The position numbers and the translations under genes are program-made. Positions 8,643 to 62,476 of a DNA stretch of 64,000 nucleotides are shown here, in pieces (the first letter of the stretch is position 1; every line of letters begins with the position of its first letter). The notes beneath the pieces were generated by a model. That model was not told the origin of the DNA. It made no database searches and saw only the letters and a list, made by a program, of their open reading frames with translations. Source of the DNA: Octopus bimaculoides (Eukaryota); NCBI RefSeq assembly GCF_001194135.2, contig NC_068994.1, forward strand, positions 45,012,260-45,076,259, in the 5' to 3' direction.

Positions 8643-8685
<43 letters not shown>

Positions 8686-8932: not shown

Positions 8933-8971
<39 letters not shown>

Positions 8972-9659: not shown

Positions 9660-9690
<31 letters not shown>

Positions 9691-10100
9691 TCTACTATAG
9701 GCACAAAGCCTGAAATTTTTTTTGGGGGGGGGGGCACTAGTCAATTATACCGACCCCAGTGTTTCACTGGTACTTAATTTATCGACCTTGAAAAGATGAA
9801 AGGCAAAGTCGACCTTGGCAAAATTTGAACTCAGAATGTAGTGATGGACGAAATATCGCTAAGCATTTTGTCTGGTGTGCTAATGATTCTGCCAGCTTGC
9901 TACCTTAGTTAATAATAACAATAATAATATTTTTTAACTTAGGGACAAATCCATTGCTTTTAGATGGGGAAGGGGGGGTGCATCCATCAAATTGATCCTT
10001 AAGCTTTTGACTGGTACTTATTTTGTTGATCCCAAGGGGAGAAAAGAATGCAAAGTATTTCCTGGTAATGGTGGGGATTTGAACAAAAATAAAATCTATC
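5820..10100 (-). repeat. Head-to-tail array of about 20 family-A SINE copies separated by (AAT)n/(ATT)n
   Basis: Units of about 200-250 bp recur with GACCCCAGT..ACTGGTACTTA..GAAAGGATGAAAGGCAAAGTTGACCT..GAATTTGAACTCAGAATG, all in one orientation (e.g. 6360-6540, 6760-6890, 7270-7480, 8220-8430, 8690-8900, 8970-9190, 9200-9420, 9440-9660, 9690-9910). Confidence 0.9.
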
Positions 10101-15244: not shown

Positions 15245-15283
15245 GATAGTGTACATGAACATATATATATATATATATATATA

Positions 15284-15322
<39 letters not shown>
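15245..15322. repeat. (TA)n + (GA)n compound microsatellite at start of FAM98 intron
   Basis: Directly visible ATATAT.. and AGAGAG.. runs. Confidence 0.95.
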
Positions 15323-15325
<3 letters not shown>

Positions 15326-15331
15326 ACGAAC

Positions 15332-16518
15332 CTCCACCTTGATTCCAGTTGCTGCCCATCTGTTGTTGTTGCTGTTGTTTCTGGTCATTCCAGTTGCCCT
15401 GGATCCGGCCACCTCTACCGCCACCTCCACCACCACGGTCACTCTGGTAGTTCCCACCGCCTCCACGTCCTCCTCCACCGCCGCCACCCTGGTTAGCGTT
15501 CCTCTGCTGGAATGCCGGCATTTCGGGTGGTGGCGGTTCGTGTTCCCACGCCCGGCCACCACGATCGGGNNNNNNNNNNNNNNNNNNNNNNNNNNNNNNN
15601 NNNNNNNNNNNNNNNNNGCCCGATCCGAACTTTGTTGATGGCACACTGGGTTTTTTCACGTGCTTCGCCGCTGCTCGTCTTCTGGATCTGTAACAGACCA
15701 TCTCTGGCAGCAAGTATCTGACAGATGCCAATGTTAGATTTCGATGTTAACTTTTTGTTCCGGGCCTCGTACACAGCCCGAATCTGTTTTTCGTTTAACT
15801 TCGCCTTGTCCGACCACATAAACGATTGAATAGTAACATCCAGTCGTTTCAACAACATCTCTCGCCGGGTGTTGTACTCTACCGACAGTGAATTGTTAAT
15901 GTTTAAAATGTGGGCCCACTGTTTGTCAGACAATCGTGTCTTCATCAGAGATTTGCCCAGCTGGTTCGGATTTTTGCTCATCATTTCTTTAATCTTAGCT
16001 TCGACTTTGGAAAACAGCTGATTCGCCGTTATACTCGCCGGCGGTTTGGCAAAACCAAGAGCAATCAGCATGCTCTTGAGGAAAGCAGCTATTTCAGACT
16101 CGCTGCTAACTTCTTGGTTGTTCTTAACAGATACCAAAGCTATAGGCTTATTCACAGCTAGCATCATGGCACTTGCTAATTCCATGGTTAAATAGTCGAG
16201 TAGTTGCAGACGTACAGTCTTAGTGCTTAGTCGCTCGTTGATAGTTCCACCGGTCAAACTATTCACAGGACATTCGATCTCGCGAAGGAATGCGCTCAGT
16301 TCGAGCATGAATGTATCGCTATCACTAGATTCTGTGATGGGGTTTACATGTTCCTCCATGATTAGGAAGTCTTTCAGTTTGAGTGTAAGCCATGATACTA
16401 TCTGAGTAAACAGCGGTGACCGTTGTCCGTCTTCCAAAGCCTTGTCAAACTCTTCTCCATCAATCTGTTCAACTGGATAGCCCAAGTCTTCAAGAACGTC
16501 CAGCATGTCACATTCCAT
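15332..16518 (-). CDS. FAM98: FAM98 family protein (DUF2465; tRNA-ligase complex/RNA-granule component), main coding exon
   Basis: MECDMLDVLEDLGY..LFTQIVSWL..FMLELSAFLREIECP..RLQLLDYLTMEL..YNTRREMLLKRLDVTIQSFMWSDKAK..KTQCAINKVRIG[gap][18 protein letters not shown] followed by RGG-rich sequence. This matches vertebrate FAM98A/B ([31 protein letters not shown]). The apparent frameshift coincides with the 48-N gap at 15570-15617. Probable donor GGAG|GTTCGT at 15331. Confidence 0.95.
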
Positions 16519-17488: not shown

Positions 17489-17537
17489 ATGCCGACTTAT
17501 TTCTTAAGACCTGAGAATGCCCTCAACCGGGCTAACG
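17489..17537 (+). CDS. EIF3A: eIF3a exon 1 ([16 protein letters not shown])
   Basis: ATG at 17489; donor G|GTATGT; homologous to human MPAYFQRPENALKRAN. Confidence 0.95.
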
Positions 17538-20500: not shown

Positions 20501-23500
20501 AAGCTTGGGTGGGAATAGGTGGAATGAGATAAAGATAGTGGTGATAAGGTATATAGGTACAAGAAAGTGAGTATAACAGAATACTGGAAGGGTAAGTGTA
20601 TGGGAAGAGTGACATGTGGTTAGAGATGGGGATATGAGTGAGAGTAGTGAATGGTGATTGAGGTTAAAAAAGTGTGGTCAGTGTTAAATATCAGATTGAG
20701 GGTGGGGAGGAGGAGGCAGTAAGTGTTTGTACATGGAGATTAGCAGTGTAATGAAATTGTCCGTAGATGGGAAAATAGGAGAGAGAGTGATAGAAATGGA
20801 GGCTTACAGTTACAGACGTGGAAGTCAGAGATATATAGGGGTGGGTGTAAGTGGTAGACAAAAGTAGTAGGGTGTCTGTGGCAGGAATGAGAGGGTGTTG
20901 AGAATGATAGCAGACATGGATGGGTTTTAGGGATGAGGTATGGCAGTTGTGAGATGTAGCTCAGGGGAAAGGGAAGGGTCAGCATAGGAAGTGGGTGATC
21001 AGCGGAAAATTAAGTGGCATGGGATGATATTGAGTGCCAGACCGATATTAAAAGGAAGCAGTTTCAAGGAGAAAAATAGCTGGTAGCACAAAAAGATGAA
21101 GTATGGGCAGTACTGTTCTCGTGGTTACAACAGCTGAATAGCCATGATTACAAGAGTGATAGAATGTGGTGTGTCAGGAAGATGAAAAGGGTGCAGGGAT
21201 AAAGCCCAGTTTGTATAGATGTAAACAATGCTTTCAGGACCATATTGTGTGTATATACACACACACATGCAGATATACATGTTGATATAATTCTAAGAAT
21301 GTAAAGAATGAAAAAGGTAAATAAAGACTACATATGTTTCTTAGCTAAACTTAATGTGTTACATAATTTGCAACACATACAAAACCTGTTTAGCTACTCC
21401 TTAGTTCATATTACTTTAAATTTTTTTACATTATCGCATGAAGAGTGAATGAGTCAGTTCAAGCATTATCTGCTATAGAAGTCAATATGGTGGGTAGATT
21501 TGACAGTCTACTCTGAGTTTCACGTTATATATATATATGTGTGTGTGCGTGCGTGCGTGTATATATATATATATTTAAGGAATGGAGTGAATGCATGTTA
21601 TAACTGCATACTTTATTCCGACATGTTTCGAAGAATTACAAATTATGCTATCCATACGAATCGTCGATGTTAAAAATGTAAACTTCTCCTCAGGGAAATG
21701 TATGGGAACCATCTTAAACTTAAGACATTATGACCGAGTATTCTTGCATATTTCACCTGTTTGAGGATGTAACCAGTATGATTAATGTTTTGTCTATTGC
21801 ATTTATAAATTACATTCATGAATTGTAAATATATATATATATGGTGTGACATTAATTAATTACTGGATACAGAAACATGTATTAAATGAAATAAATGAAT
21901 ACCAAATTGGTAACTGACAGTTATGAGGAGAGAGAATTAATCCAAATGATAAATAATCACTACTGTACTGTCAACAAATTTTCTTGACTGGAGGCATCAG
22001 TAAAGCGAAAACGTGAAAACAAATTTCTACGGGTGGCATCAGAAAGGCAGTGTGGTATTCCCAAAGAGATGTCGTCGATAGAGCAAAGTCAGATGACACA
22101 TCTTTACTGGAGCAAATATGGATCTAGTTTGTTTGGCTGCCAGCATTTCAGAAAATTTTTGTGAATTTGTATTCCACACATGGGAAATCAAATGGTTATG
22201 CTAAAAAGAAAAATTGTGGTGGATTTAAGGCCTAGGTCTATTTGGCTGCTATTTTTAGCACATATGACAACCATCTCAATGATTGCGACAAAAATATTCA
22301 ATCAATAAAGGGATGTCTTATGCGAGTAGTCAGATCAATAAAAATGCATCCTTTTTCTAGGCATGCCAAGATATAAGTAAATACAGACTTGATTTCTAAA
22401 AATTCTTTGTCGTCCACAAAATGTTCACATCACCCACCATTTTCTGGAAATTCGCCCATCGCCCACTGTTGGAAGCTATGTGCTAGACAATGAGGGTTAA
22501 GTTATGGTGCGAGCAAAGTAGGTTTTAGTATTTGGAGATACGTGGCTACTCACATTTAGAGAAAAGAGTGAGAAAGAATCGGTGGCTGTGAAAAGATAAA
22601 TATTGATGAAGCAGTATCTAAGTGAACCTTCAAAGTATGGGGGTGGAGTTGTAAGCATATATGGTGGGGTGCAAGAGATGGAAAGTGGGAAGATAGGTAC
22701 TGGCTATAAAAATTAGGTGGAATTGGAAAAGTAGATGTAGGTTGTAATATGTTTACACACACATTGTCATCATCAATTAACATCCACTTTTCCAAGCTTG
22801 CCTGGGTTGGACAGTTCTTTTGAAGCAGATTTTCTATGGCTTGATGCTCTTCCTGTTGCCAAACCTCACCTGTTTTCAAGCATGACCTGTTCTTGCAGAC
22901 TATTGGAAATGAATGCCACTTGTATGACAGTGACACTATCACTTGATGTCAAGATTCTTGCATATTTCACCTGTTTGAGGATGTAACCAGTATGATTAAT
23001 GTTTTGTCTATTGCATTTATAAATTACATTCATGAATTGTAAATATATATATATATGGTGTGACATTAATTAATTACTGGATACAGAAACATGTATTAAA
23101 TGAAATAAATGAATACCAAATTCACACCTCCTGTTTTTCTCTCGTGTGTGTGGTAAATTGTCCCATAAAATGGAGGATGAGTGTTTTATGATTTGTTACT
23201 TATATATCAGAATGGGTTTTAATCTAAACTAATTTAAATAAGAGATGGGTATTCTGATTGCTTAACCCATTAGCATTTAAACGGCCATATCTGGCCAAAA
23301 TATTCTTCCTCTTTTATATTCAAACTGGCCAGATCCAACATCTTGCACATCTCCTACAATGTCATGGTAAAAGTAACATTGAAATCTTGAAGCCTCAAAA
23401 TAATGTGTGATTAATTCAAAACAATAAATAAGCACTGCATTCAACAGAGTAATCTTAGTGCTAAAGGGTTAATGATTCAATAGCCATGTGGTTAACAGAA

Positions 23501-26500: not shown

Positions 26501-29500
26501 CATGGGTCAAGTTTTTGTGGGAGTCTTATCGTCAATGTCTGGATCTTTTGAGGAACAATTCTCGTGTTGAAAGACTGTACCATAACATTGCACAGCAAGG
26601 TAAGTAATGAAGTGACTACTTGACTGTCCATTACTTAGCAGGATTATAGAATTGGTTGAAACAAACATCTCAATACTGTCATTACCAGAGCTCATAGATG
26701 GGGCTTTCATTAGCTGTATTGCAAACTAAAGGAATTTGTTAATTATGCTTTGTTGTATAGAGTTACTATATTTCCGGAAAAAATACACCCTTCATGAGTT
26801 TGTTCCAACATAAGTATTTTATGGCTCCTATTTTTTCAACAGTCAAGGAACAAAAATTTAAGTGCATTAGCTCTTAGAGACTGCTTATTTTCCTCACTGT
26901 GAATGAAACCAGATCACAAAATTAGGATCTCACATTCATCATCTACTAAAAATATGGAGAATAATGTGTATTAGAGGTGGAAAATATTAGTAAAAGTTCA
27001 GTTTTTTTCAATAGAAATGTTATGGGAACCCCTTCTGTTGTCATTTCATCTAGTGAGCTTCTTTTACATGTTTGGTCCCCAAGCTGCACTGTGAGATGAA
27101 TTTGTGGTGCATAAGAACTAAATATCATTTTGCCTTGGAAATATGTACAACTCCAGCAAATTTTAATTCCCGGTCCATATAATAGTCTAATGAATCCAGT
27201 GTGCCAAACTGTCTGTATTCACAATCTATATAACCTTGCTGTTGGAGGAATCTCAGAAATATCCCCACCACCCAATTTTCATTAACAAGGCATAAATATT
27301 ACAGTGTTTTGTTTTATGGCTCTTTTTAACCTGCTAGTGTATTTAGAATACATAAATAAATACTGGTTAGTTTTAAACGTGGCCAAGTTTATTTGTATGT
27401 TGGTGTTAGTATGAAGATATAATAGTTCTTTAGTTCAAAATATATTCTGTAAGGTATGGTCAGTGTGTCAAAAGGTCAATGAACAATGTAGCCTAATCTT
27501 GTTTGAAATTTTCTTTCCAGCTTTCCTCTTCTGCATCAATTACAACCGAAAGACAGAGTTCAGGAAACTATGTGACAATGTAAGTTTCTCTTCTGTCTTC
27601 CTTTCTTCCTTATATACATGCACACACTGTAAGATATCATTGTATGCAATTCTGTGAGCTAGTCATTTAAGGGTGAGATGCTTGTGACCCATGATCATTG
27701 CATAGTTTTGGTGACCTCATGAAACATGGACCTAGCTATTTCTCTCAATATATGGATGCACACACACACACACACACACGTCATTGTAATGCCCACTTTT
27801 CCATGTTTGCATGGATCAAATGAAATTCATTGCGGCAGATTTTCTTCAGCTGGGTCCCTTCCTGTCAGCAAACTATACTTGTTTCTAAGCAAGTAATATT
27901 TCCCCATGATCAAAGGTATTTTTGTGGAAATTAGCAAATAAAGGAGACTGCTTGTATGATCATGATGCTCGTTTACAACTATCACACAATGTCAAGACAA
28001 GGGGACACTAACACCATCGGATGCATATACATATGTGACGAGCTTTCACTTTCTGGTTAATCTGGTTTGTAATAGAAGACCATGCAGTGGGATTGAACTC
28101 AAAACCACATGGGAAACGAATTCTTAATCATGCAGCCATGCTCAGATGTTGATGGCCATAATTTTATTTAGGAAAATACTAAATAAAGAATCTTTGTAAA
28201 GACTCAAATCTTAGATGACTTCTTTATTGAGTGACAACTCAGACACGACCACTTTATTCTGAACTTATCTAGCTTAAAATATTTCCATATATTTTTCTTT
28301 GTAGCTCCGCACACATTTGATGCAAATCAACAAACAGCAGCACCAGCAAACTGCTATCAACCTGAACAATGTGGAGTCACAAGCAATGCATTTGGAGACA
28401 CGTCTGGCTCAGCTGGATAGTGCCATCAGCATGGAGCTGTGGCAGGAAGCTTTCAAAGCTGTAGAGGATATTTATAACTTGATCAGTTTATCAAAGAAGC
28501 CGCCCAAGCCCGCTCTGATGGCTAACTACTACCAGAAATTAGGACTTGTTTTTTGGAAATCAGGAAATCATCTATTTCATGCCTGCACACTACATCGACT
28601 TTTCCATTTGTCCAGAGATCAGAAAAAGAATTTGTCTCAAGAGGAATTACAAAGGTAAAACAACTAAATCTATGTTTCCTGTATGTTTATATAGAATTGA
28701 TAAATTTTTGTATGTGCCTTTAATTCTGATGTCTTTTCTTCACATTTCCTTCATCTCTTGTAGAATGGCAACTCGTGTATTGTGTGCCAGTTTGGCTATT
28801 CCAATTCCTCCGGCTAGAAATGCTATTGGTCAGTTATTGGATATGGATGAGAGTACTTTAGAGAAACAACGTCGTTTAGCCACCTTGCTAATGCTCAACA
28901 ACCCTCCCAACAGACAGCAACTTATCAAAGATTTGGTATGTTTTTTTGTTCTTATATATTAAGACCAGAGGTTGTCAAAGTAATGATTTGTCTGTTTAAA
29001 TTCGGACTTCATTGAAAGAAATTCTCTTATAAAAAGGAGAATCTCTTTGACTCAAGCCTGTCCAAGAATNNNNNNNNNNAAGTGTTTGGATTTAAATTTA
29101 AAACTCTTCTTATGTTATGTAAGAACCTTTTGTTATACTTCAAACTGAATTTCAGTTTTATTCAAATTGTATGACAGTTTTTGTCTTCAAAGTTAATTGA
29201 ACCAGCAATGATTCATTAGAAACATGGTCATTAAAGGATAAAGAATTTCATGAAATAAATTACCAGTGTTCTATTTGGATCAGTTCAGTTCATTGTGCTC
29301 TTTGCTCACCAAGAAGTGGCTTTCGTGTTTAAAGAAAGAAATTATAAATACTTATACGCTCACCCTACAATTGGTACAGTGAAGGTAGTTAAATCTGGAG
29401 AGTGTTGGACCTAATGTTATACGGTGTTTTGTTTCCAGCTCTTGATTCTTCATCATCATCATCATCATCATCATCGTTTCTACAGCTGGATGCCCTTCCT

Positions 29501-32500
29501 AACGCCAACCACTCAGAGAGTGTAGTGGGTGCTTTTACGTGCCACCGGCACGGGGACCAGTCAGGCAGTCCTGGCAACGGCCACGCTCAAAATGGTGTAT
29601 TTTGTGTGCCACCCGCACAAGAGCCAGTCCAGGGGCACTGGCAACGATCTCGCTCGAAAGTCCTTACACATGCCATGGGCACAAGTGCCAGAAAGGCGAC
29701 GCTGGGCACAGGTGCCATCACGATTTCGCTTTAATGCATCATTTAATGCCTGAATTCATTTCTGTCAACCTTGTCATGTCCTCTAGTCATAGCCCTTGTT
29801 TTACTGCCATATACAACCTGCCTTTCACTCTTAGGTAAAAGCCCTTTGTTATCAACAAAGGTAGTAGCTCTCTGAACTTTGCTCAGTCTGTTCTTATCCT
29901 AGCAACTGCACTTTCTCAACTTCTTCCTCTACTGCTAACTTGGTCACCGAGGTAACATAAGCTTTCTACTACTTCTAACGATTCCCCGACATTTGGGGAG
30001 GTCTATTCTCTACATTTTTAGTGTTTATTGCACCTGCACATCTGTTACACGCAAAGACTACTTTCTCTGTTAACCTTCTTGTGATACTACTGCACCTCTT
30101 ATGTGTCCATAACTTTTGTTGGGTGTGCCGTATGGAGTTTCTACCAAAAACCTTTCCTACACATCAAGCAGAGCCATCTCCCTGAAGGAATTTGAGATTT
30201 GTTTGTTTTCCTACTCACTAGATGAGATTTTGTGGGGGTCCATGCTAGCTAAAGTAAATCTAAGGCCCTTAGATTCCAGACCTTACTTCCTCACTTGAAA
30301 TTTTCTCTCTAGTTCAGGTTGTGATTCAGCTATAAGAACAAGGTCATCAGCATAGAGGAGCTCTCAAGGAAAGCCAGTCTTAAATTCCTCTTATGGCCTG
30401 GAGGACTATGATAAGCCAGAGGAGAATGAAAACCAATCTTTGGTGAACTCCTACTTGTACACTAAATTCATTGCTATACTCATTGCTGACCTTCATCTTA
30501 CTGACAACATCCTTGTACATGGCTTGTACTGCTCTCACCAACCACTCATCTATCCCTAGCTTGCACATTGACCACCAGATGAGGGAGCAAGGGACTCTGT
30601 CAAAGGCCTTCTCCAGGTCTACAAAAGCCAAGTACAGAGGTTTATTCCTGGCTCAATGCTTCTTATGCAGTTGCCTTACCGGGAAGATAGCATCAGTGGT
30701 GCTTCTCCTTGGCACAAAACCAAACTGCATCTCGTTGATTGTAAGTTAAAATTCTGTTCTATCATTTCAGCTTTAATTTCTTGCATGTTGTGGGTTTCCT
30801 ATAAAACTGAAAAGTTGAAAACGCTTTCTTGCAGCAGCCCACTATCTCAAACTGGGTGTCTCCCTCAAACTCACAATTCATTGTATACCTCCACAAATGC
30901 ACATTAAAGGTTTAGTGTCAACAAGGGAGGAAAAGAATACTCAATATATAATACGTATTATTTGCATTGAATTTAAGAAAAAATAAATTCAAGTTTCATG
31001 CCACTGATCATCAGATGTGTGTATAATTTCTCCCCCATTTGTAGTATATCTAAAACTTTATTTACTGTCTCCTCCCCTTTTTTTTTAAAGATGGTAGGGT
31101 GTGATTTCGGGGAAAACAACTGAATTATACTTGGATCCCGTATAGTAATGCTGATTATAAATGAATCAATTTTTTGTATTAATTTGTAATATTTGTCTGG
31201 TTCAGGTGAAATACAGTGTTATACAGTACGTTTTCCCCGAGCTACAGAACCTGTATCGATGGCTGGAGATTGACTTCCATCCTTTGAAATTGTCTGATCG
31301 TGTGAAACCCTGTATCGAATTCATCAACAACCAGCCTGACTTGAAGCAGTATGTACCAGCTCTGCAAGACATCATCATTACCCGTGTACTTAAACAGGTC
31401 AGTTTATATTTACTGATTTCTCTATCTATCTATCTATGTATTGTATCTACTGTATTTTAACATATATAAGGAACCCTCGTGTATAAGGACACCCCTAATT
31501 TTAGGGGTTTAAAATTTGGAAAAAATGTTTTGTAAGGGATTATAATGCTATCCATGTATAAGAAACTCCCATATTTTTTAAACCTAATTTTGACAAAAAA
31601 GGGTTCCTTATATTAAAATACTGTAATTTAGGTACGACTGTTCTTAAGGCTAGATTTCAGTGTTTATGTGGCATACAGAGTTCATTTGATTGTCTACTTC
31701 TTCATGCTAGTGTGGTGGTGATTTTGATACAGGAATTTGTAGCCAAGTGCTCTTCCTGTCTCCTACCCTCATCTGTTTCTCAGTTAAGGGGTTTTATATT
31801 CCACGTGAGTATGTATATATATATATATATATATAGAACAGGCTTTTTTTTTCAGTTTCTGTCTTATTAAATTCCTTCATGAGGTTGTAGTAGATATCAC
31901 TTGGCCAAAGGGATGTCCTGTGGAGCTGAACCTAAAACCATGAACTTCTTAACTACATCCATGCCTGCATCTGTGCACAATATTTGTAAGGAGTTCACTG
32001 GTTCAAACCCTGCCATGGCAAAAGTGTTTTACTTATAACACTTGAATTTCAAAGTTTCCTCAATCACCTTAGTGTGATCAAGTCTTTCTTTATTTCATAA
32101 TGCTTTGGTTTTGATACTTCATAGTATTCTACCATATGTAGAGTATAATGTGGTACCAGGCTGTGCTATGTTATTCCTGCTCTATTATATATCTATATTA
32201 ATATCCACATGTGTGTGTGTGTGTGTGAGTGTGTATGTATATATGTTGCCATTAATATACTATAATTCTTTCTCTACTTGCAGGTATCTCAAGTCTATCA
32301 GACCATAGAATTTAACCGTCTATCTGTTTTGGTACCATTTGCTTCTTCATTCCATTTAGAAAGAGTGATTGTCTCTTCTGCAAAGCATTTAGATCTTCAG
32401 GTGAGTTACCATTCTTCTTCAGTACTTGGCATGGTTGTTTGATTCATTAGGAATTTTTTTTATATTACTATTATCAAGTTCTCTTCAGTTGAACATTTTA

Positions 32501-36600: not shown

Positions 36601-38384
36601 AGAGAGTCAAGTTTGTCAAGATTTTGTCAGAAGCAAGAAAGTCTGACTTTAATGTGAGTAGATGTGTCAAAATTTACCTGCCTGTTGTTGCTTTCACGCT
36701 TTTGGTGTTCAGCAGGTTAGCTGTATATGAGTGATAGGGTGAGCAATTTGCAATAGTAGGTTTGAATTATATTGGTTGTCAGGAGCAACAGAAGTAAACC
36801 TACCTCCAGTATAGTGATTGATGATATATAAAGAACTTGGTAGCTCATGGGTTTTTGCTTATGTAATATATTTAAATCGTTGGATATGCTGGTAAATTAA
36901 TTTAATATAGTATTGATACTGAGAGTAAAATTCTCGCGTTTTTGTCTGTTTCACCACAACAGGACAGATTGAAGAAATTTGAAGTACACATGCAAGATGA
37001 AGCCAAGAATCGGCTCAAGAAACGCAAGGAAAAACGTAAAAAAGAACGCCGAGAGAAGTTCTATCGCGAGAAGGAGGAGGCAGAAATACGGTTGAAGGAA
37101 GAGACGGAGAGAAAAGGTAAAAAAATTTTTATGTCTTTCTCTGGTGGTTGTTTTGACATTTTTATGTATTGACTTCCATATCAACTTAGTTGTTCTTCTT
37201 TCTCATTGTACTTACAAGGTGATCTTAACACTCTCACTTGATCTGGTAGAACTACCAGCCAAATCTTTCTCAGTCATACCCTATTTTTTCAGAAAAGGAG
37301 GATAAATTGAATGATGTTAGGACGGGATAGTTACAGCATTGAATGAATGCCTTTGATTCTAGGTCTGAACCTAAAACAAAACAATTGTTTAATTCTATGT
37401 CAATTATAATCAAATACATTCCAAGCATGAATCTCTCCCTCCCTTTCTGTTTTGAAGGAATATTAACATAAACAAGTACATGTTACCTCACTAGCTCAGC
37501 TTGGCAATTACAACAGTGTGTGGTGTGTATATTTGATATATGGCTGTCAGTTGACTATTAAAGAGCTTGGTTGTGGCTATATGAGAGGAGTTGATTAGGA
37601 AATGTGTGTGCATATGGCACTTTGTAGGGTTTTTTTTTTAAAAATCAGAACTTAAAATTTATTTGAGTTTTTCTGTGACACGATGAGCTCAGATGGGTCA
37701 TCTTGTGTTTCAATAGTATTAGGATGAGGTCTTGCTGTGGATGGAGCATCATCATCATCATCGTTTAACGTCCGCTTTCCATGCTAGCATGGGTTGGACG
37801 ATTTGACTGAGGACTGGTGAACCAGATGGCCACACCAGGCTCCAATCTGATTTGGCAGAGTTTCTACAGCTGGATGCCCTTCCTAATGCCAACCACTCTG
37901 AGAGTGTAGTAGGTGCTTTTACGTGACACCGGCGAGTTATCATATTACTCCCTTTGTGTGTGTGTGTGCAATTGGGACTACATTGTCCAGTATGGAATTT
38001 TTAAGATGGTTGCTCATGTTTGGGGTAGATTTTGACTTATTTTTCTTGCAGATTGATCCTTTAGTTAGTATTCAGATTACTCTGTTGAATGTAATACTTA
38101 TTCACATCGTTTTGAATTAATCATGCATTGTCATGTGGCTATGTAATTCAAATATAGTCAGTTTAAGTGCTAAAGGGTTGATCTCATTGCCTGTTGTAGA
38201 TCTGGTGGTAATGGAATTATCATTCAATATTGGTTTTCTGTGCTGTCATGGGCTGGATGGTTTGTTGGTCTGGCAAGCCACATGGCTACATTGGGCTCCA
38301 GGGTCAGCTTTGTCATGGTTCTAAAGCTACAGCTACATACCCTTCCTAATATAATACCAATCACTTCATAGTGTGTATTAGGTG

Positions 38385-50491: not shown

Positions 50492-53400
50492 TTTTGTATC
50501 TGTGTTTGTCCCCCCACCATTGTTTGACAACCAATGTTGGTGTGTTTATGTCCCTCTGTAACTTAGCAGTTTGGCAAAAGAAACCAATAGAATAAGTACC
50601 AGGTTTACAAAGAATAAATCCTGGAGTCGGTTTCTTTGACTAGAAGTTTCTTTAAGGTGATGCCCCAACACGGCCACAGTTAAATGACTGAAACAAGTAA
50701 AAGAATGAAAGAATAGTGCCAGTTGGAGTAAACAATACAAAACAAAACCAAAGACAAAGTGTGACTCACCTGCATGTGATAGGACTGACTGGCAATTAGT
50801 TGTGAGGGCAGCACGAACTTTGACTTCTGATAAACCAAGCATTAAACCTCTGGTAGCAAGAATGAGAGTCAAGGAAAAAATGGTGGGCACCTAGACAATA
50901 ACACTGGTTACATTGCATGATATACTAAACAGTGCTTTGGCGTCTGTGTGTGTGTGTGTGTGATGGGCTGGAGGGGACGGGTGGTAGTATTCAAACCAAA
51001 TGTAGCTATGCCAAAATAGCAAAGAGAGGGAGAGAGTAAAAGAGGGGTAGTGAAAGTCTGATAATGTTAATGCAAAATAGAATACATATTAGTATCACTG
51101 TCTTAATGTCTACATTTCCATGCTTATGAAATTCTCAAGTTTCTTGGCATGAGGTATCAAGACAAGGAAACACACACACCACTGTTGTTGTTGTTGGCAC
51201 TCCGTCGCTTACGACGTCGAAGGTTCCAGTTGATCCGATCAACGGAACAGCCTGCTCATGAAATTAACGTGCAAGTGGCTGAGCACTCCACAGACATGTG
51301 TACCCTTAACGTAGTTCTCGGGGGGGATATTCAGCATGACACAGTGTGACAAGGCTGACCCTTTGAATTACAGGCACAACAGAAACAGGAAGTAAGAGTG
51401 AGAGAAAGTTGTGGTGAAAGAGTACAGCAGGGTTCGCCACCATCCCCTGCCGGAGCCTCGTGGAGCTTTAGGTGTTTTTCACTCAATAAACATTCACAAC
51501 GCCCGGTCTGGGAATCGAAACCGCGATCGTATGACCGCGAGTCCGCTGCCCTAACCACTGGGCCATTGTGCCTCCACTACACACGCACACACACGTACAT
51601 ACAAACAAACAAACAAACAAATGCATATATATATATCAGCAGTAGCAAGGTGTGCAGCTGTGCAGTGGGGCTAGACCCTAGACAACATAGTTGGGAAGCA
51701 AGCTTTTAATTAAAGCTGAGACTTCCCTCTGTCGTTATACTTAACTTCAAAACACAGAACACTGAGTAGAGACATAGGGATACCTCAAGTTTGAATAAAT
51801 GAATAAGCTCTACTATATGTATTCAGTACTTACACACTTCATTTGGAAATTGAGAGAGAGAGAGAGTGATGGGTTGGGAGTTCAGCAGTTATTAAGAGTA
51901 TCTCTCTGTTATAAAGGATACAGTACTCTCACATCATAGGGTCCTCGTAAGTCTAAGGTCTAAAGTAAAAGAAAAGGAAAGTAAAAACAAAAATATATAC
52001 AAGACATTTCAACAAAAAGAAAGACTGCTGAAGTTTCTATAAATAGATATACAGCACTTTGGGTCATAGTAGTTGTTTAACCACAGGTTGGATTTGATAC
52101 AGGAGACCTATGATCACAAACCTTGCAGCCTTGACCATTTCATCTTGTATTTGCACATAATATATCTACAGACTTGTCATCCACTGTTCCTTTCTATTTT
52201 TTTAAGGTGGTAGGTTATGATTTCAGTGATGAACTGGTGTCCCATTCAAGGGGGAATCTGGGTTAAACTTTAGCCTTACGATCCCTGGGGTTTGTGACAA
52301 ACCTGAGACCTAAGAAAGGTATGATTTTTCAAAGATATTTGGTTGATATTTTTAGCATATTGAGTAGCCACATAGAGGCTCTTTCGATGGCAAATGTCAG
52401 CTATTTGTAACAGTTATAGTGTTGTTGATGATATCAGAAGCACATGGCTAAATGGTTAAAAATGTTGGCCTCACAATCATAAGGTTGTGGGTTCAATTCC
52501 CAGACCAGGAGAAATATTTTGTCCTTGAGCAAGGCCTTTCCTTTCATGTTACTCGAATCTACTCAGTTGAAAATAAGTACCAGCTTAGTGTTAATGTTGC
52601 CCTTTCTCTCTCTCATCAGCTATCACATCAATGCTTCACAGAGTTAAAGGCTGAAAGAGCCTAGAGGGTATACATGACTACTTGTGACTACACAAGCAGC
52701 TAAAAATATTAGTGAAGCATGGTACATGCTAACAGGTCATACTCACTGGCAAGTGATGGCTACATATTTGTTTCATGTTGGTGATGAGGAGGAGGAGGAG
52801 GATAATTTAGTTGCTGATGGTGATATTCAATATTGTGAAATGTTGACAACACAGGCAACAAAAACATAGAAAAAAAAACAAGCCTGGTATGGAGATTTAG
52901 AATTACAATTGTGTGTATGGGTGTGTGCACATGCATACATGCATATATATATAATCAAACTAAAACATAGGCTAAACAATCATATATTAATTAATATCGA
53001 TTTATTACCAGGAAGCTAGCACATTTAAAGAATCCGAGAGAATCAGAAAAAATATCTGAGATCTCAGGAGATTAAAGTATATGTTTATATATAATGTTGA
53101 CCACTAAAGTGGACATTTAATGTGCTAGAAATAGACCACGTGTCTACTAAGACCTAAATTGTTCTCAAAACAAAATTCAGTGGAATACCAAAGCGTATGT
53201 GGGCAACAGTGAAAATTACAGAAATAAAACATGTTTAATAATGTTTTATTTCTGTAATTTTCACTGTCTTGCCCGCATATACTTTGGTATTCCGCTGAAT
53301 TTCGTTTTGAGAACAATTTAGGTCTTAGTAGACACGTGGTCTATTTCTAGCACATTAAATGTCCACTTTAGTGGTCAACGTTATATACAAAAACATATAT

Positions 53401-53678
53401 NNNNNNNNNNNNNNNNNNNNNNNNNNNNNNNNNNNNNNNNNNNNNNNNNNNNNNNNNNNNNNNNNNNNNNNNNNNNNNNNNNNTATATATATATATATAT
53501 ATAAAAGATAATAAGAGTGAAAAAACTACAGAAGGCTTGTGTTACATGGTTAAAGTATATATTTAAATTATGTCAGAAAAATGTTAGAAAAACGTTAGAA
53601 AGATGTTATAAAATCTTTTTGGTATATAAACATTGTATTTTGAGAAATAACCGGTTTCGTGTTGTCTTTTCAAATTTC

Positions 53679-53715
<37 letters not shown>

Positions 53716-55896
53716 GATGTATGTGTGTGTGACTTCAGAACAGAAAAATATGTAAACAAGAAAAAAGAAAGAGACAGAGATGCTATGATGGCTTCATAGC
53801 TTGTCGTTGCTATGACAACTGGTAAACAAATAACAAATAAATACTCACATTCTCACAGCCACTGCTTAAAATGATATTCTGAAAGAAGAAAATAAAATAA
53901 GATTGTCTGAGAAGTTATCAGATATCAGAATGTGTGTGTGTGTGTGTGTACATGCACATTTGTGTCTGAGTAAATGTTTGCATTCTGCACTGATTTTAAA
54001 ATTTTTTGCTGAGTTTCTGGACAGTGACAATCAACGACCATCACTTTCCACAGCTCAGCAAATGCTGAAGATGAGTGAAATGAAAAGGTTCCCTACTTGG
54101 AAAAACAAGTTATGAGTTATCAACAGGAGGGGCATGCATCCAACAACGCTTCAATTGTACATATTTTTATAACCCATACTAGTTAAGAAAAAAATGGCAT
54201 AAAATGAACAAATGAATGAAATATTACTACTGTGATGACATCGACAACATCAATGTTACTGTCATCATCATCAGCATCATTTAATGTGCGTTTTTCATGC
54301 TGGCATGGGTTGACTGGTTTGACAGGATCCAATGAACCACAGAACTGCATCAAGCCCCAGTATGAGCTTTGGCATGTTTTTTCTGCAGTTGGATACCATT
54401 CCTAGTGCTAGTAGTGATGATGATGATGATGATGATGATGATTGTGATAAGGATTTTCGAGCGAGATCGTTGCCAGTGCCCCTGGACTGGCTCTTGTGTG
54501 GGTGGCACATAAAGTACACCATTTCGAGCGTGGCTGTTGCCAGTACCGCCTGACTGGCCTTCGTAGGATTTTCGAGCGAGATCGTTGCCAGTGCCCCTGG
54601 ACTGGCTCCTGTGCAGGTGGCACATAAAATACACCATTTGAGCATGGCCGTTGCCAGTACCGCCTGACTGGCCTTCGTGCCGGTGGCACATAAAAAGCAC
54701 CCACTACACTCTCTGAGTGGTTGGCGCTAGGAAGGGCATCCAGCTGTAGAAACTCTGCCAAATCAGATTGGAGCCTGGTGTAGCCATCTGGTTTCACCAG
54801 GCATTAGTCAAATCGTCCAACCCATGCTAGCATCGAAAGCGGACGTTAAACGATGATGATGACATACATAGAAACCAATTTACAACTTACTTTTCCTTTA
54901 CCAACTTCAATCAGAGTCTGGACGTTTGTGATGATGTTTCTCCGGGCCTCCTGGTCCCTAATCATGGGCCCATACTGAATCTCAAAATGTACACCACGTT
55001 CATAAGCCTGTTTGTTGCACAATAAAAGAAGGAAGGAAGGAAGGATGTGAATGATGCAGTTAATTAAACAATAGCATATAAATAAATGAATGCAAGCATG
55101 GTTGTGTGATCAAAGGTTTATTCTGCAATCATTTGCTTTTGGGTTCAATCCCAATGCACAGCACCATGGGCAAGTGTCTTTTACAATAGCCTTAACAGTA
55201 ACAAACGATGATTGATGTCACATCTCAAAAGACAACCACTAGATAACATTGACAAGTGTATTAATTTGATTTACCATCCATATTTATATATAAGATACTA
55301 CAATTACCCGTCATTTTTGATGGCATGGGGGTCAGCTAGTTTAAATTACTGTAATTATTAAGCTGGTAGATGATAGAAAACTTGATACAGTGGCAGAAAG
55401 AATGCTTTGTATATATAGTGGCATTCGTTTACATTCTGAGTTCAAATTCCACTAAGTGGAACAATAAAATACAGTGCTAATCAAGTGTTAGAATCATCAC
55501 AATCAACTACAGCCTCCTACAAAATTTACTGGCCTTGTATCAATGTAAAAAAAAAAAAAAAAAGGTCTAACTTCTGTCATACACATGTGTATATGTGATC
55601 ACATGATCACATCATCAAAATCTTGAAGCTATGCGATAATGTTCGTTTAATTCAAAGTAATGTGAATAAATAAGCATGACATTTGGCAGAATAATCTGAA
55701 TGTTGAAGGAATGAAGGAACTACAACAAGGAAAAAACAAATGCAGAGATAGAAGAGGATGCGTAGGAGACATGTCAAACTGTGTCATATAGTATTAGTCC
55801 ACTTACTGCGTGTAATGATGGGTACTTCAAATTAAAAGGAAGAAGCTTGGATAAATCCAGTGAGATGATGTCAACTTCCAATGTTTGACAGGCCGT
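49151..55896 (-). CDS. RPP30: Ribonuclease P/MRP protein subunit p30, 3' six coding exons (5' exons not located)
   Basis: Exons 55896-55807 (90 nt, TACQTLEVDIISLDLSKLLPFNLKYPSLHA), 55007-54891 (117 nt, AYERGVHFEIQYGPMIRDQEARRNIITNVQTLIEVGKGK), 53878-53849 (30 nt, NIILSSGCEN), 51959-51922 (38 nt, TLDLRGPYDVRVL), 50849-50770 (80 nt, GLMLGLSEVKVRAALTTNCQSVLSHA) and 49389-49151. All introns are GT-AG. Matches human RPP30 (RGLAFELVYSP, KGKNVIISS, LEIRGPYDV, GLSE...AAVSTNC). Confidence 0.93.
50318..50715 (+). mobile_element. Family-B SINE
   Basis: GTGGTAAGAAGCTTGCT..GGTTCAGTCCCACT..ACCTTGGG..GTGAGTGGATTTG, internal TA/GT run, tail AAATGACTGAAACAAGTAAAAGAATG. Confidence 0.8.
50770..50849 (-). CDS. 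RPP30: RPP30 exon (80 nt)
   Basis: CCAG acceptor, GCAG|GTGAGT donor; GLMLGLSEVKVRAALTTNCQSVLSHA. Confidence 0.92.
51183..51577 (-). mobile_element. Young tRNA-derived SINE, family C, (AAC)n tail
   Basis: Minus head GTGGAGGCACAATGGCCCAGTGGTTAGGGCAGCGGACTCGCGGTCATACGATCGCGGTTTCGATTCCCAG (A- and B-boxes). Closely similar to 62131-62476 in the opposite orientation; CpG-rich. Confidence 0.85.
51922..51959 (-). CDS. RPP30: RPP30 exon (38 nt)
   Basis: CCTTTTCTTTTACTTTAG acceptor; TLDLRGPYDVRV; GTATCC donor. Confidence 0.9.
53088..53387. repeat. Foldback (palindromic) element, about 145-bp arms, 8-nt loop, TA-flanked
   Basis: 53088-53232 is the reverse complement of 53241-53387 with six substitutions and one 2-bp indel. 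Confidence 0.92.
53849..53878 (-). CDS. RPP30: RPP30 microexon (30 nt)
   Basis: TTCTTCTTTCAG acceptor; NIILSSGCEN; GTGAGT donor. Confidence 0.9.
54270..54862 (+). mobile_element. Family-D retroposon tail composite with tandem GC-rich modules
   Basis: Three GCCAGT..ACTGGC..GTGCNGGTGGCAC..AAA..CACC modules, then GGAAGGGCATCCAGCTGTAGAAAC..CGTTAAACGATGATGATG. Confidence 0.75.
54891..55007 (-). CDS. RPP30: RPP30 exon (117 nt)
   Basis: AYERGVHFEIQYGPMIRDQEARRNIITNVQTLIEVGKGK; GTAAGT donor. Confidence 0.93.
55807..55896 (-). CDS. RPP30: RPP30 exon (90 nt)
   Basis: TACQTLEVDIISLDLSKLLPFNLKYPSLHA; CAG acceptor, GTAAGT donor. Confidence 0.92.
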
Positions 55897-56214
55897 CTGT
55901 GAAACAGCAAAAAAAAAAAAAAAATGTAAATGACATGGTTATACATAAAATTACAAACTATTCTACATATTTTTCTTCCAATTTNNNNNNNNNNNNNNNN
56001 NNNNNNNNNNNNNNNNNNNNNNNNNNNNNNNNNNNNNNNNNNNNNNNNNNNNNNNNNNNNNNNNNNNNNNNNNNNNNNNNNNNNNNNNNNNNNNNNNNNN
56101 NNNNNNNNNNNNNNNNNNNNNNNNNNNNNNNNNNNNNNNNNNNNNNNNNNNNNNNNNNNNNNNNNNNNNNNNNNNNNNNNNNNNNNNNNNNNNNNNNNNN
56201 NNNNNNNNNNNNNN

Positions 56215-56780
56215 GTGTGTGTACTTACATATAAGAGACCAAAGTGTATGTATGCTGCCATATGTATATAAAAAGGAATACAAAAAATGGGAGAAAAACA
56301 CAAAACATCTAGACAGATGATACAAAAAAGAGACAATAAAAAACACGGATGGGTCATTCGAAGTTTTCTTTCCTCAGTCGAGTTCCAGATTATCTTTGCA
56401 ATTGCAGCTGGTTATACTCGAGATTGCTCCAATCTGGCCAGCCCCAAGGAAAAACTAAGCTAAGAGCATTAGATTCCTTGGAAGAAAGCAGTGAATGTAG
56501 ACGAAAACAAGGACGGGAAAAAAACGGAGAAATGTTACACAAATACAAATGTAAATAACAAGATATAAAAACAGGTGTCTTTCGACTAAGGACGAATTAT
56601 ATTAAGCTGGCGTGTGTGAAAGTGAAGCCTTACGGCAGGGACATAAGAGATAACAGGCATGGGGAGGAATATAGATGTTGCACGGATGGTAGTCGAACCA
56701 AGAAAGAAAGGTCAGGCTTGGCCAAACACCAGATGCGTACGGTATTTGAGGACATGTATAATCTTTGTTTTAGAAAATAA
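56215..56780. repeat. Unclassified CpG-retaining interspersed repeat next to (GT)n gap (possible Penelope-like end)
   Basis: Composition and CpG retention differ from the flanks; it contains a CTGAGGA..CGAA hammerhead-like remnant on the minus strand (56350-56385). Classification is uncertain. Confidence 0.35.
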
Positions 56781-56789
56781 TAATGGCAG

Positions 56790-57590
56790 GCCCTCAGCTT
56801 ACTCAAAAATGAAGAGACATGCTGTTATTATGGTTATAAAGGCTGAGCATAGTAATTTAGAAATATCTCGATTTTTAAAAGTTGCCAGATCTTTCATCTA
56901 CAAAGTTTGTGAGGAGCTTAAGACAGAAGATGGAAATGTATCACCAGTATCAAAGCATAGAAAGCATTCTAAATGCTCTGAAATCATCAGAACACCTGAA
57001 TTTATCCAACAAGTTCAACAAACCGTTGATTACAATCCCAGAAAGTCCATGAGGTCAATTGCAAAAGATCTCCATATGTCAGAAGGAATGGTCAGAAATG
57101 TTATCCATGAATACATCAGATATATGATGAGGATATATATGAGGATATATGATGAGGAAAGGTCAATTTGTCAGGAAAAGCAAAAGGAACTCACTACATC
57201 ATATCTAAAAGGCTCTTCAACAAACTGAAAAATTCAGCTGAAGAAGATATGATTTGGTTTTTCTAAAACAAGAAAAATTTCAACCAAGATCAAAAAATTA
57301 ACAGAAGAAATGACAGATGGTTATGTGCAGACCCTTCTGAAGTTCCAAGTGTTATGCATACAAAATTTCCTGCAACTGTCATGGTTTTAGGGGTTGTCAG
57401 CAATGAAGGACATGTGATGCCTCCTTACTTCTTTCTACAAGGCCTTAGGGTTAACTCTACCACCTACATTGAGGTCCTGGAAATAATTGTTAAGCCCTGG
57501 ATAGGCAGTGTATGCAATGGAAGGCCATATGACTCTAGTAACACAGGAATGGATGGCTGAAAATGTTCATGATCACACAACCCCCAACAT
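56790..57590 (+). mobile_element. Degenerate maT/DD37D-type (Tc1-mariner superfamily) transposase
   Basis: MKRHAVIMVIKAEHSNLEISRFLKVARSFIYKV..RTPEFIQQVQQTVDYNPRKSMRSIAKDLHMSEG..; then HTKFPATVMVLGVVSNEGHVMPPYFF.QGLRVNS..Y.EVL..IVKPWI, with frameshifts. Confidence 0.8.
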
Positions 57591-57755
57591 TACATGCATC
57601 ATTTATTTAATAACAGTTTGACTCAGCTCCATGCAACTTAATGTTTGATAGGCTCATAGAACTATACTTGTGGGAGGGCTGAGGGAACCCAACAAAGCTG
57701 CATAGAACTGAGTCGAAATGTTATTAAGTAATGTGCGCACGCACACACACACACG

Positions 57756-57983
57756 TTAACCATTTAACGTTTAAACCAGCCAAATCCAGCCCAAATATTC
57801 TCTCTGTTTTATGTTTGAAGCAGTCAGATCCAGCTTCTCAAACTGACCCTAGAAAGTAATTCTAAAAATAAACAATCACATCATTGAAATCTTGAAGCTT
57901 GGAGATAATGAATGATTAATTCAAAGCAATGTGAATGAATAAACATTACATTTGAGAGAGTAAGATTACCACTAAAGGGTTAA
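57756..57983. mobile_element. piggyBac-like MITE copy
   Basis: TTAA-CC..AAAGGG-TTAA; body similar to 23262-23472. Confidence 0.65.
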
Positions 57984-58221: not shown

Positions 58222-58652
58222 CATTCCAAGAAATGAGAGAAAAATCAAAAAACAAATAATGTCACTAAAGAATTGCAAATGAGTGTTATGTCAAGTCGGA
58301 GCTCAGATGCATATGACATGGCAGAGCTGTTTATGACATCATAACTATGTATAAGAACAACAGAAGCAACAGCAGCAACAACAACAACAATAACAAGAAC
58401 AGCAACAACAAACTAACACCAACAAAAACAGGCCAAATCTCTTTTCTCTTTAGCAATAATTGTTTCCCTTTCCTGCTGTTGCCCTGCTGTTCTTCTTGTA
58501 GTGAAAACTGTTCAGTCAAAAGATTTTTTCCAGCACGTGCCCTGCACTTTCTTTCTCCCTCCCTCGCATGCACACGTGCATACACACACACACACGCACT
58601 CACGCACACACACACATATATTCTCTCACTCTCTTCCTTCTTTGATAATCTA

Positions 58653-59195
58653 ATGGAGAACTTTCTTACCTGGAGTATTGCACAGGTAGACACAACTTCT
58701 TTCACCTCCCCACACAAGTCCCAGCAGTGTGACGACAACAACAACAACAACAACAACAACAACTACAACTACGACAGCTACAGCAAAAATAAGGACAGCG
58801 AAGACAACGAACTGGAGATTCGATTATCGGCAATCTGTGCAGGAATCTTGCTTCTACTTACAATCTTCTTAACCACTGTCGTCTACGTGTCGAATATGTT
58901 CAACAATGCGGGGCTGGCTCTGTGGGAGGGCTGGGGAAACCCAACAACAAAGACAAAACGAGAGAAGGCTCGATGCTGGTGCGATGTCATAGCTCGGGCC
59001 TTGCTGGCTCCCAAGACGGAGAAGGTGACACCAAGAGAAAGTTCAAACCCTGTGAGTTGTGGCGAAAATGACGTGAGTGACAGCAGAAGCAGCAACAGTA
59101 AGGTAGAACGATCTCTTATTATCAGAAAGCAAAATGATAAATTACTGACGAAGAAGAAATATCAAGAATTAAGGATTGTCATTGACTTTCGGTGA
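58653..59195 (+). CDS. Putative intronless single-pass membrane protein (180 aa), unrecognised family
   Basis: Stop-free frame 58347-59195; ATG at 58653. Poly-Asn N-terminus, hydrophobic LSAICAGILLLLTIFLTTVVYV (aa 58-79), basic KTKREKAR, CWC, and C-terminal KYQELRIVIDFR*. Lies in a CpG-rich island with promoter-like microsatellites. No homolog recognised. Confidence 0.55.
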   Translation: MENFLTWSIAQVDTTSFTSPHKSQQCDDNNNNNNNNNYNYDSYSKNKDSEDNELEIRLSAICAGILLLLTIFLTTVVYVSNMFNNAGLALWEGWGNPTTKTKREKARCWCDVIARALLAPKTEKVTPRESSNPVSCGENDVSDSRSSNSKVERSLIIRKQNDKLLTKKKYQELRIVIDFR

Positions 59196-59267
59196 GATTC
59201 TGCTGAGATTTTTTTCCTTCTCTATTTTAACCTCCCATCAAATATTTTAAGTGTAGCACCACTGTTT

Positions 59268-59765
59268 GCATTTAGTATGTTCTTCCGTCTGCCCACACGC
59301 ATTTAGGTCATAATGTTGCATTCCATGAAACCCCAGGTCAGCATTGACCAAACAGATCTGTAACCGAAAAACATTCAAGGGATACGCATACTTTCTTTTC
59401 CCCCCTCTGTAATAGGGTATCCTGGACAACAACATTATCCAATTTGTTCTTATGTTAAGATGGTAAGGTCTGATTTGAGGGAGATTTACCTGTGATTTTT
59501 TTTAGAAAATGGAACAACTGTATTCAGTATGTTCTTCCATCTTTCTGAATACATTTAGGTCATAATGTTTGTATTCTATGAAACCCCAGGTCAGCAGTAA
59601 GCAAGCACATCTACGACCGAAAACATTTAAGGGATGTACTTTCTTTTCGCCCTCTGTACTAGAGTATCCTGGACAACAGCATTATCCAATTTGTCCTTAT
59701 TTTAAGATAGTAGGGTCTGATTTGAGGGAGATTTAGCTGTAATTTTTTGCAAATGGAGTAACTGC
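59268..59765. repeat. Diverged tandem duplication, two units of about 250 bp
   Basis: AGTATGTTCTTCC..CATTTAGGTCATAATG..ATGAAACCCCAGGTCAGC..TATCCTGGACAAC..ATTATCCAATTTG..TCTGATTTGAGGGAGATTTA occurs twice. Confidence 0.85.
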
Positions 59766-60824
59766 ATAGAACAGGCATGGGTAACCTTTTTCAAGAAGTG
59801 AGCTGCATGAGACATGGCTCATCATCAGATGAACCACATCATCATCATCATCGTTTAACGTCCGCTTTGACTGAGGACTGGCAAGCCAGAAGGCTGCACC
59901 AGGCTCCAATCTGATCTGGCAGTTTCTACAGCTGGATGCCCTACTACTAAGAAAACTGAAAGAACTATTTTGTAAGGCATTGCCATTTAGAAATCCGCCG
60001 CAAGCTGCGCATGAAAAGCATAGAGACTTCACTTATTACAGTCTATCTTGGCATTAAAGTTTAGTCCCCAAGTCATTGCTGATCCAGTGGACCTGATCAA
60101 CATTATTCCAGCTGAGCCCATTCTGTCCAGGTCTAAATTATTCAATGTGCTCTTCCTTCTTTCTAAGATAGTAAGGTGTGATTTGAAAGAAATTTGGCAA
60201 CGGGTTCTGTCAGGTGGGCAGAGGTTTCAGTAGTGTAATAATTTGCATGTAGGTCAATGTTTTAATTCTTTGACTTCAAGTTAGCTCCGAATAAGCAAGA
60301 TTAAAAGCATTCCAACAATGGCCATTTCATCTTTATATCAGGCAGTATAGCAAGGACTATGTTATCCAATGTATCCCTTTTTAAAACAAAAAATTGTACA
60401 ATATGATAAGAGACATTTGGCCATTATTTTTAGCGAGTCTTGCAATTTCAAACAGGCTCCATGATTGCTTCATAAAGGTCTGCTTTGATCAAAGGGGTTC
60501 CAACTCAGACCAGTTCATTTATTTTTAATAACCACAATATATCTAAGATTACAATATTGGACATGTACTTCTATTTTCTAAGATAGTAGGATTAATTTGA
60601 GGGAGATTTGGATCCAAGCAGCTCAAGTGACCATCCCATACTGCTGTCTTCTATCTATTCTAATGTTTCACATATTCCATAGTTTTTCCATATAACAATA
60701 TTGCTTATTTTGTTGTTGTGGTTTGTTCTTTTATAAAGGAGAATGTTTTACGATGAAAGTAAACAAACATTTGTTCTTTTTTAGAAGTGTTGAGATGTAT
60801 TGTAAGAAACAGAATTAAATTTAT

Positions 60825-60999: not shown

Positions 61000-61257
61000 A
61001 GAATGGTACTTGTATAAGATCTCAGTTCTGACTGAGCATATCTATGATGAAAATCATTACGACCTTGAGCATTTTTCTCTCAAAACACTTAAACTCTGTC
61101 GTACATGCACACTGATATTGCACATCCAGCAAAGCATACTAGCTTCATTTCTTTCAAGTCTTCACATGTCCTCTGCAATCACAGCCCAGGTTTCACTGCT
61201 GTATAGCATGACTGTTTGCACACAGGCATCATACAATCTTCTTTTCACTCTGAGAAG
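61000..61257 (-). mobile_element. RTE LINE 3' ORF fragment
   Basis: LRVKRRLYDACVQTVMLYSSETWAVIAEDM*RLERNEASMLCWMCNISV. Confidence 0.75.
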
Positions 61258-61375
61258 NNNNNNNNNNNNNNNNNNNNNNNNNNNNNNNNNNNNNNNNNNN
61301 NNNNNNNNNNNNNNNNNNNNNNNNNNNNNNNNNNNNNNNNNNNNNNNNTATATATATATATATATATATATGTAT

Positions 61376-62130: not shown

Positions 62131-62476
62131 GTGGAGGCGCAATGGCCCAGTGGTTAGGGCAGTGGACTCGCGGTCATAGGATCACGGTTTCGATTCCCAG
62201 ACAGGGCGTTGTGAGTGTTTATTGAGCGAAAACACTTAAAAGCTCCACGAGGCTCCGGTAGGGGATGGTGGCGAACCCTGCTGTACTCTTTCACCACAAC
62301 TTTCTCTCATTCTTACTTCCTGTTTCTGTTGTGCCTGTAATTCAAAGGGTCAGCCTTGTCACACACTATGTCACGCTGAATATCCCCGAGAACTACGTTA
62401 AGGATACACGTGTCTGTGGAGTGCTCAGCCACTTGCACGTTAATTTCACGAGCAGGCTGTTCCGTTGATCGGATCA
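62131..62476 (+). mobile_element. Family-C SINE (cut by N-gap)
   Basis: GTGGAGGCGCAATGGCCCAGTGGTTAGGGCAG..GGTTTCGATTCCCAG; matches 51183-51577. Confidence 0.85.

Follow-up and report, generated by a model that had tools for sequence, protein, structure and literature searches.

The window, i.e. the whole 64,000-nucleotide stretch of Octopus bimaculoides DNA that was analysed, carries FAM98A, eIF3a and C-terminal exons of RPP30, followed by the long open reading frame (ORF) considered here (Table 1). FAM98A is represented by an intronless ORF at 15493-16518 on the minus strand, 100% identical to UniRef A0A0L8I3Y0_OCTBM (O. bimaculoides), and the gene itself spans 15231-16518, its Gly/Arg-rich C-terminus going on in another frame past an N gap at 15570-15617. 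eIF3a runs on the plus strand from its ATG at 17489 to beyond 37.1 kb. The two genes are arranged head-to-head across a CpG-rich stretch (observed/expected CpG, o/e, of 0.86-1.41 over ~15.5-19.7 kb) that looks like a bidirectional promoter, and this order is kept in an octopod relative (contig L001). Within eIF3a intron 1, the two copies of a 169-nt direct repeat (21740-21908 and 22954-23122, 100% identity) are spaced by 1214 nt, which reflects either very recent duplication or an error of assembly. Repeats are found elsewhere too: at 6300-9930, a SINE-like element (~250 nt, with (AAT)n tails) forms a dense array of ~10 copies, more copies of this element lie at 1.3, 4.0, 13.1 and 33.3 kb, and a short LINE/RT-like fragment 'LLRVKRRLYDACVQTVMLYSSETWAV' at 61165-61260 (minus strand) adjoins an assembly gap.

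The RPP30 exons jointly match Pfam PF01876 at E = 5e-21, over profile positions 102-214 only. Its N-terminal half (positions 1-101) was not found in 55.9-64 kb by tblastn, a two-sequence HMM, a motif regex or Pfam, the last of these scans covering all minus-strand open segments of that interval; the exons to the left of the ORF are C-terminal only, as the initial annotation had it, and the missing half does not appear to its right within the window either. The exon for the region of human 'NVIISSAAERP', expected on the minus strand between 54891-55007 and 51933-51959, was not located, and an 83-N gap (53401-53483) lies inside the RPP30 interval 51960-54890. A GC-rich (50%) block at 54250-54862, which adjoins an RPP30 exon, is a cluster of SINE-like repeats; considered as a promoter island it was rejected, with repeat copies at 29476-29666 and 37752-37933 (91-98% matches). 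In addition, inverted copies of a single element (51231-51577 and 62131-62476; 94-97% complementary), separated by ~10.5 kb, enclose the 5' region of RPP30 together with the ORF; they are young repeats and could in principle be a source of misassembly.

The ORF had been proposed to lie nested in an RPP30 intron. It is indeed on the strand opposite RPP30 and on the 5' side of the exons found, and since this is the side where the missing 5' exons must be, its position fits an RPP30 intron. Nesting antisense to RPP30 is plausible on these grounds, and the proposal stands as far as strand, position and the absent N-terminal half go; however, no host exon was found beyond the ORF within the window, and a 230-N assembly gap (55985-56214) intervenes between the ORF and the last RPP30 exon found.

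Table 1. Coordinates of the open reading frame, its predicted product and neighbouring features in the window
Feature	Position	Strand	Basis or remark
RPP30 C-terminal exons	50770-50849, 51933-51959, 54891-55007, 55807-55896	-	tblastn, hmmsearch
Decayed mariner/Tc1-like transposase fragment	56659-57560	+	weak Pfam match to HTH-like N-terminus, then '...VMVLGVVSNEGHVMPPYFF...' motif
Dispersed repeat	57780-57983		repeat scan of window
Stop-free frame, 292 codons + TGA stop (879 nt)	58317-59195	+	shuffles
ATG-to-stop ORF, 282 aa	58347-59195	+	program-made ORF, confirmed
Upstream 102 codons from first ATG	58347-58652	+	microsatellite-rich, non-coding-like codon score
Microsatellites in frame: (AAC)n, (AC)n, (ACA)n	58356-58430, 58582-58616, 58735-58769	+	
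Candidate CDS, 180 codons + stop, coding-like core	58653-59195	+	codon score, GC/CpG
Poly-Asn N29-N37 (nine Asn)	58737-58763	+	encoded by (AAC)n microsatellite
Predicted transmembrane helix L58-V79, 22 aa	58824-58889	+	Kyte-Doolittle 19-residue maximum 2.55; AlphaFold2
27-nt motif TGTGGGAGGGCTGRGGRAACCCAACAA	58921-58947	+	25/27 copy at 57669-57695
Basic patch KTKREKAR (58950-58973), then CWC (58974-58982), residues 100-110	58950-58982	+	
YQEL Y170-L173, 7 residues then C-terminus	59160-59171	+	chance-level motif
~250-nt tandem repeat, ~2.2 copies, 80-90% identity between units	59170-59750	+	
Donor-like GTGAGAT (CG|GTGAGA) overlapping TGA stop, exon phase 2	59192-59198	+	
SINE-like piece	59863-59922		repeat scan of window

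Length and composition of the open frame

The stop-free plus-strand frame of the initial annotation was recovered with its 282 codons, lying within a frame of 292 codons that is the second-longest N-free open frame of the window. Over the ORF span, the ORF frame contains 0 stops versus 12 and 17 in the other two plus-strand frames, and none of 2000 local dinucleotide-preserving shuffles reached the observed length, which holds for the entire frame as well as for 58653-59195 taken separately. As a window-wide null, we shuffled the whole window in 1-kb blocks, which keeps local composition, and recorded the longest open frame in six frames (n = 200; mean 151 codons, maximum 226). Since a frame of at least 292 codons occurred in 0/200 shuffled windows and one of at least 180 codons in 22/200 (11%), the full frame exceeds chance at the window level, whereas the length of the 180-codon core by itself is not beyond chance after multiple testing.

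These numbers bear on the reading, in our view somewhat unlikely, that the ORF is non-functional, i.e. a stop-poor, A/C-rich and microsatellite-seeded stretch of RPP30 intron and at most a proto-gene, which would be neither conserved nor usefully translated. The 11% of shuffled windows with a frame as long as the core speak for it, as do the minus strand, which is also open at the same site (143 and 92 codons), the three in-frame microsatellites, among them the (AAC)n and (CA)n tracts pointed out earlier, and the end of the frame within a tandem repeat. The upstream 102 codons, furthermore, are non-coding by score, yet open too. On the other side, the 292-codon frame was never attained in the shuffles, and both codon usage and base composition set the 180-codon part apart from non-genic sequence.

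Codon usage was scored with three models trained on genes of the window (FAM98A and the exons of eIF3a and RPP30), with non-genic sequence from across the window as background. Per codon, the core reached log-likelihoods of +0.037, +0.165 and +0.129, compared with +0.09 to +0.12 for held-out true genes (FAM98A, eIF3a) and with -0.285 ± 0.16 (maximum 0.123) for 166 non-genic ORFs of at least 60 codons; under the codon models of the window's genes, it scored above all 166 of these. Its codons are coding-like in one frame only: frame 0 was the best of six under all three models, with a frame pattern near that of FAM98A when held out. Compared with dinucleotide-shuffled versions of its own sequence, the core stood at z = 2.0-3.5, falling to z = 1.7 once the poly-Asn part was removed. 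This frame-specific usage, equal to that of held-out real genes, argues against a non-functional ORF and agrees with the earlier proposal of a protein gene as far as the 180-codon part is concerned. The 102 codons upstream of the ATG at 58653, by contrast, scored -0.29 to -0.34 per codon, which is the null mean, and sliding windows placed the switch from non-coding-like to coding-like scores near this ATG.

With one ATG only in its 305 nt, the segment 58347-58652 is probably a leader or promoter rather than coding sequence. The start context of the ATG at 58653 has C at -3 (weak) and G at +4; the weak -3 base, the missing AATAAA described below and the predicted disorder outside the helix all weigh against a gene. 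Two CACGTG palindromes, 39 nt apart, are located 75-120 nt upstream of it (58534-58539 and 58573-58578), accounting for 2 of the 8 such hexamers in the whole window; they form a possible, putative bHLH-type binding pair.

Base composition changes over the same 180-codon interval. Where the initial annotation spoke of DNA of about 35% GC, the window has 37% and the ORF itself 44-45%; over 58653-59195 the GC fraction is 0.45 versus 0.36-0.37 in the flanks, and CpG o/e is 0.72 versus 0.39-0.41 (Poisson P = 0.009 for the excess). The CpG-retaining island described there is present as an enrichment, although it is modest and located inside the ORF rather than upstream: the CpG positions span 58733-59190, the ORF body, and the 353 nt upstream have an o/e of 0.39. 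The eIF3a promoter, to which it was likened, has an o/e of 1.0-1.4. For a CpG-island promoter, for which an o/e of at least 0.6 is asked, the patch reaches 0.72, with a GC fraction of only 0.45 and its CpGs inside the ORF. The step in GC and CpG over 58653-59195 mirrors that between eIF3a exons (CpG o/e 0.57) and introns (0.26), and the match of this step to the 180-codon part is a further point against a non-functional stretch. In O. bimaculoides, constitutively expressed gene bodies are methylated and start sites are spared (PMC9476566), so that a CpG-retaining patch within a CpG-poor RPP30 intron points to constraint, hypomethylation or recent origin.

Ends of the frame and neighbouring repeats

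The frame ends where a tandem repeat begins, as its last 8 codons and stop belong to the first unit: 59170-59215, comprising these codons, the stop and 20 nt beyond, aligns with the ends of the two next ~250-nt units. Because the TGA stop overlaps a donor-like CG|GTGAGA, we kept open the reading that a larger plus-strand gene has the core as its first coding exon, spliced at 59192 and with its other exons to the right of the window, which we judge quite unlikely. The donor-like site is of the type that RPP30 uses in the window (GAT|GTGAGA), the coding-like statistics start at an ATG, and no poly(A) signal is nearby: no AATAAA was found downstream of the ORF, and the first ATTAAA is at 60053, 860 nt downstream. 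Against such a gene, no coding-like plus-strand segment stands out in 59.2-64 kb, the best being 28 codons at +0.14, and the donor-like site belongs to a repeat unit; in the other copies of that unit, GAGGGAG stands in its place. Moreover, an annotated spliced octopus model containing this exon would have matched in the search of 5.8 billion proteins described below.

A mobile-element relic or retrocopy, i.e. an accessory ORF or foreign coding fragment inserted in the intron, is in our judgement very unlikely, even though the surroundings of the ORF are rich in repeats: it is flanked by the mariner-like fragment ~1.1 kb upstream, a dispersed repeat, the tandem array and a SINE-like piece, and its CpG o/e of 0.72 is near that of a young repeat at 61.35-62.47 kb (0.68). 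In addition, a 27-nt motif of the ORF recurs just 3' of the mariner-like fragment. The copy of TGTGGGAGGGCTGRGGRAACCCAACAA in the ORF (LALWEGWGNPT) has its counterpart in a decayed stretch with in-frame stops; no such 27-nt duplication is expected by chance, but the similarity to the upstream element ends within ~50 nt. Furthermore, the ORF is single-copy in the window apart from this 27-50 nt motif, contains no transposase, RT, gag or env domain, has no flanking inverted, direct or terminal repeats, and found no viral relatives in IMG/VR. The lack of a mobile-element domain and of a second copy in the window, which bears on the transposon match named in the initial annotation, counts in favour of a coding sequence.

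The predicted protein and its relatives

All elements ascribed earlier to the 180-aa product from the ATG at 58653 were found, namely poly-Asn, the 22-aa helix, the basic patch and CWC; the YQEL described as terminal is present and near-terminal, followed by 7 more residues. L58-V79 is the sole strongly hydrophobic region of the product, which has no signal peptide, as in a type III protein, and AlphaFold2, run with no alignment, returned one long helix over residues 48-93, within which residues 61-80 reach block means of 94-95 in pLDDT; the remainder is modelled as disordered, and pLDDT averages 55.8 overall. The 15 residues preceding the helix carry a net charge of -2 and the 30 following it one of +2; the N-terminal segment is 57 aa long. 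The predicted membrane helix is strong, and the charge bias fits an N-out/C-in orientation, though weakly, in agreement with the single-pass topology proposed before. A hydrophobic helix is itself compatible with a non-functional ORF, as such helices arise readily in non-genic ORFs (PMC7005711): in the window, a Kyte-Doolittle value of ~2.5 was attained by 3% of the (shorter) non-genic ORFs, and some membrane-helix-like segment was present in 24% of them.

Shuffling produced a Yxx[LIVMF] motif in 21% of tails and a CxC in 11% of proteins, and neither YxxL, CWC nor the basic patch goes beyond what chance would give. The 180-aa product contains no second Yxx[LIVMF] and, having a single Tyr motif, no ITAM (two YxxL/I spaced 6-8 residues); nor does it have juxtamembrane cysteines, CWC being at residues 108-110, 28 residues past V79, or any charged residue (D, E, K, R) inside L58-V79. 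The earlier suggestion of a receptor/adaptor or trafficking protein accordingly finds no support, and a receptor or adaptor role is, as far as the predicted protein tells, without basis.

Searches for relatives were negative throughout. None were found among 5.8 billion proteins in a word-indexed search, and exhaustive HMMER over 1.84 billion cluster representatives gave a single match, the bacterial tandem-repeat protein P0002 (E = 4e-4), which we rejected as spurious because its score is the sum over four near-identical stretches of 23% identity. Pfam returned sub-threshold noise only for the 282-aa ORF (DUF6548, E = 0.077; ETRAMP, E = 0.33), a PDB sequence search no match below E = 1.9, and IMG/VR and JGI metagenome contigs no relatives. 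Among gene calls, neither the ORF (as 282 or as 180 aa) nor the mariner-like ORF beside it had an exact match, and no Rfam family was detected in the whole window. Homologues under purifying selection were found in none of the libraries searched.

This lack of homologues has some weight, since the sets searched include the UniProt and RefSeq models of O. bimaculoides, O. sinensis RefSeq, and gene calls, FAM98A among them, made on Logan contigs of genomic appearance from a related octopod. Database coverage is incomplete, as an octopus RPP30 query (108 residues of exon sequence) retrieved none. The related-octopod contigs (L001-L003 and L004) span only FAM98A and the eIF3a 5' end, which lie ~40 kb away from the ORF. 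Of these contigs, L001 aligns collinearly with window positions 17755-13139; its identity is 86.5% across FAM98A and the promoter of this gene, and 74-79% outside them. The absence of any homologue in the libraries searched fits the lineage restriction claimed in the initial annotation; it is likewise what a non-functional ORF would give, relatives being absent even from sets with octopus proteins and relatives' contigs.

Interpretation and comparison with known systems

We tentatively favour, without quite holding it probable, that 58653-59195 is a genuine, unannotated and taxonomically restricted coding sequence, whose product would be a small membrane protein resembling type III. The gene would consist of this one exon, or would have it as its first coding exon, and would lie antisense to RPP30, probably in an RPP30 intron. 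Translation from the ATG at 58653 would yield a 180-aa bitopic protein with L58-V79 as signal anchor, its acidic, Asn/Ser-rich and disordered N-terminus of 57 residues outside (type III, N-out) and its basic, Ser/Lys-rich and disordered tail of 100 residues in the cytosol. We would expect such a membrane protein to be small, young and little conserved. Transcription and translation of the ORF, like the topology and any function of its product, are points that we infer from its sequence.

A more specific version appears rather unlikely to us: a young Octopus-restricted gene that lies antisense within an intron of RPP30, was put together in part from microsatellites and repeats, is transcribed from its own hypomethylated patch with a CACGTG pair upstream, and encodes a functional small single-pass membrane protein. 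Were this true, it would represent a traceable recent gene birth in a cephalopod. More generally, if the candidate coding sequence is expressed and translated, it would join the many cephalopod-specific genes as one further lineage-restricted gene for a membrane protein, and would exemplify a gene nested in the intron of a housekeeping gene and drawing on microsatellites and repeats, though without touching any question of long standing. Should it not be expressed, the locus would illustrate that composition bias and microsatellites can yield a long, coding-like ORF with a convincing helix and 'motifs'.

Among known systems, adaptors of the LAT, DAP12 and FcRgamma type resemble the predicted protein in that its ectodomain is short, its helix is the only one and its tail has one YxxL, but the ORF lacks an ITAM, a membrane-adjacent Cys, a charge in the helix and any sequence similarity to them, and the likeness is at chance level. 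Type III (N-out/C-in) bitopic proteins share with it the missing signal peptide, an acidic N-terminus (57 aa here), a helix of ~22 aa and a basic C-side; they are a topology class and not a family, and in the octopus ORF the charge bias is weak (-2/+2) and insertion is predicted. Genes nested antisense in a host intron are comparable in position, the ORF being opposite in strand to RPP30 and on the 5' side of the exons found, although here no RPP30 exon lies on the far side within the window and an assembly gap lies between the ORF and the last host exon. Also comparable are orphan or de novo small single-pass membrane proteins such as those of the emerging ORFs of yeast (PMC7005711), which likewise have no homologues, are short, contain one helix in an otherwise disordered, low-complexity chain, and have a non-genic or intronic setting. 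In contrast to the yeast ORFs, the octopus ORF is A/C-rich and not T-rich overall, and is known here from sequence alone; for a de novo ORF, it is unusually long (180-282 codons). We regard the locus as a candidate orphan gene and not as a system of a new kind.
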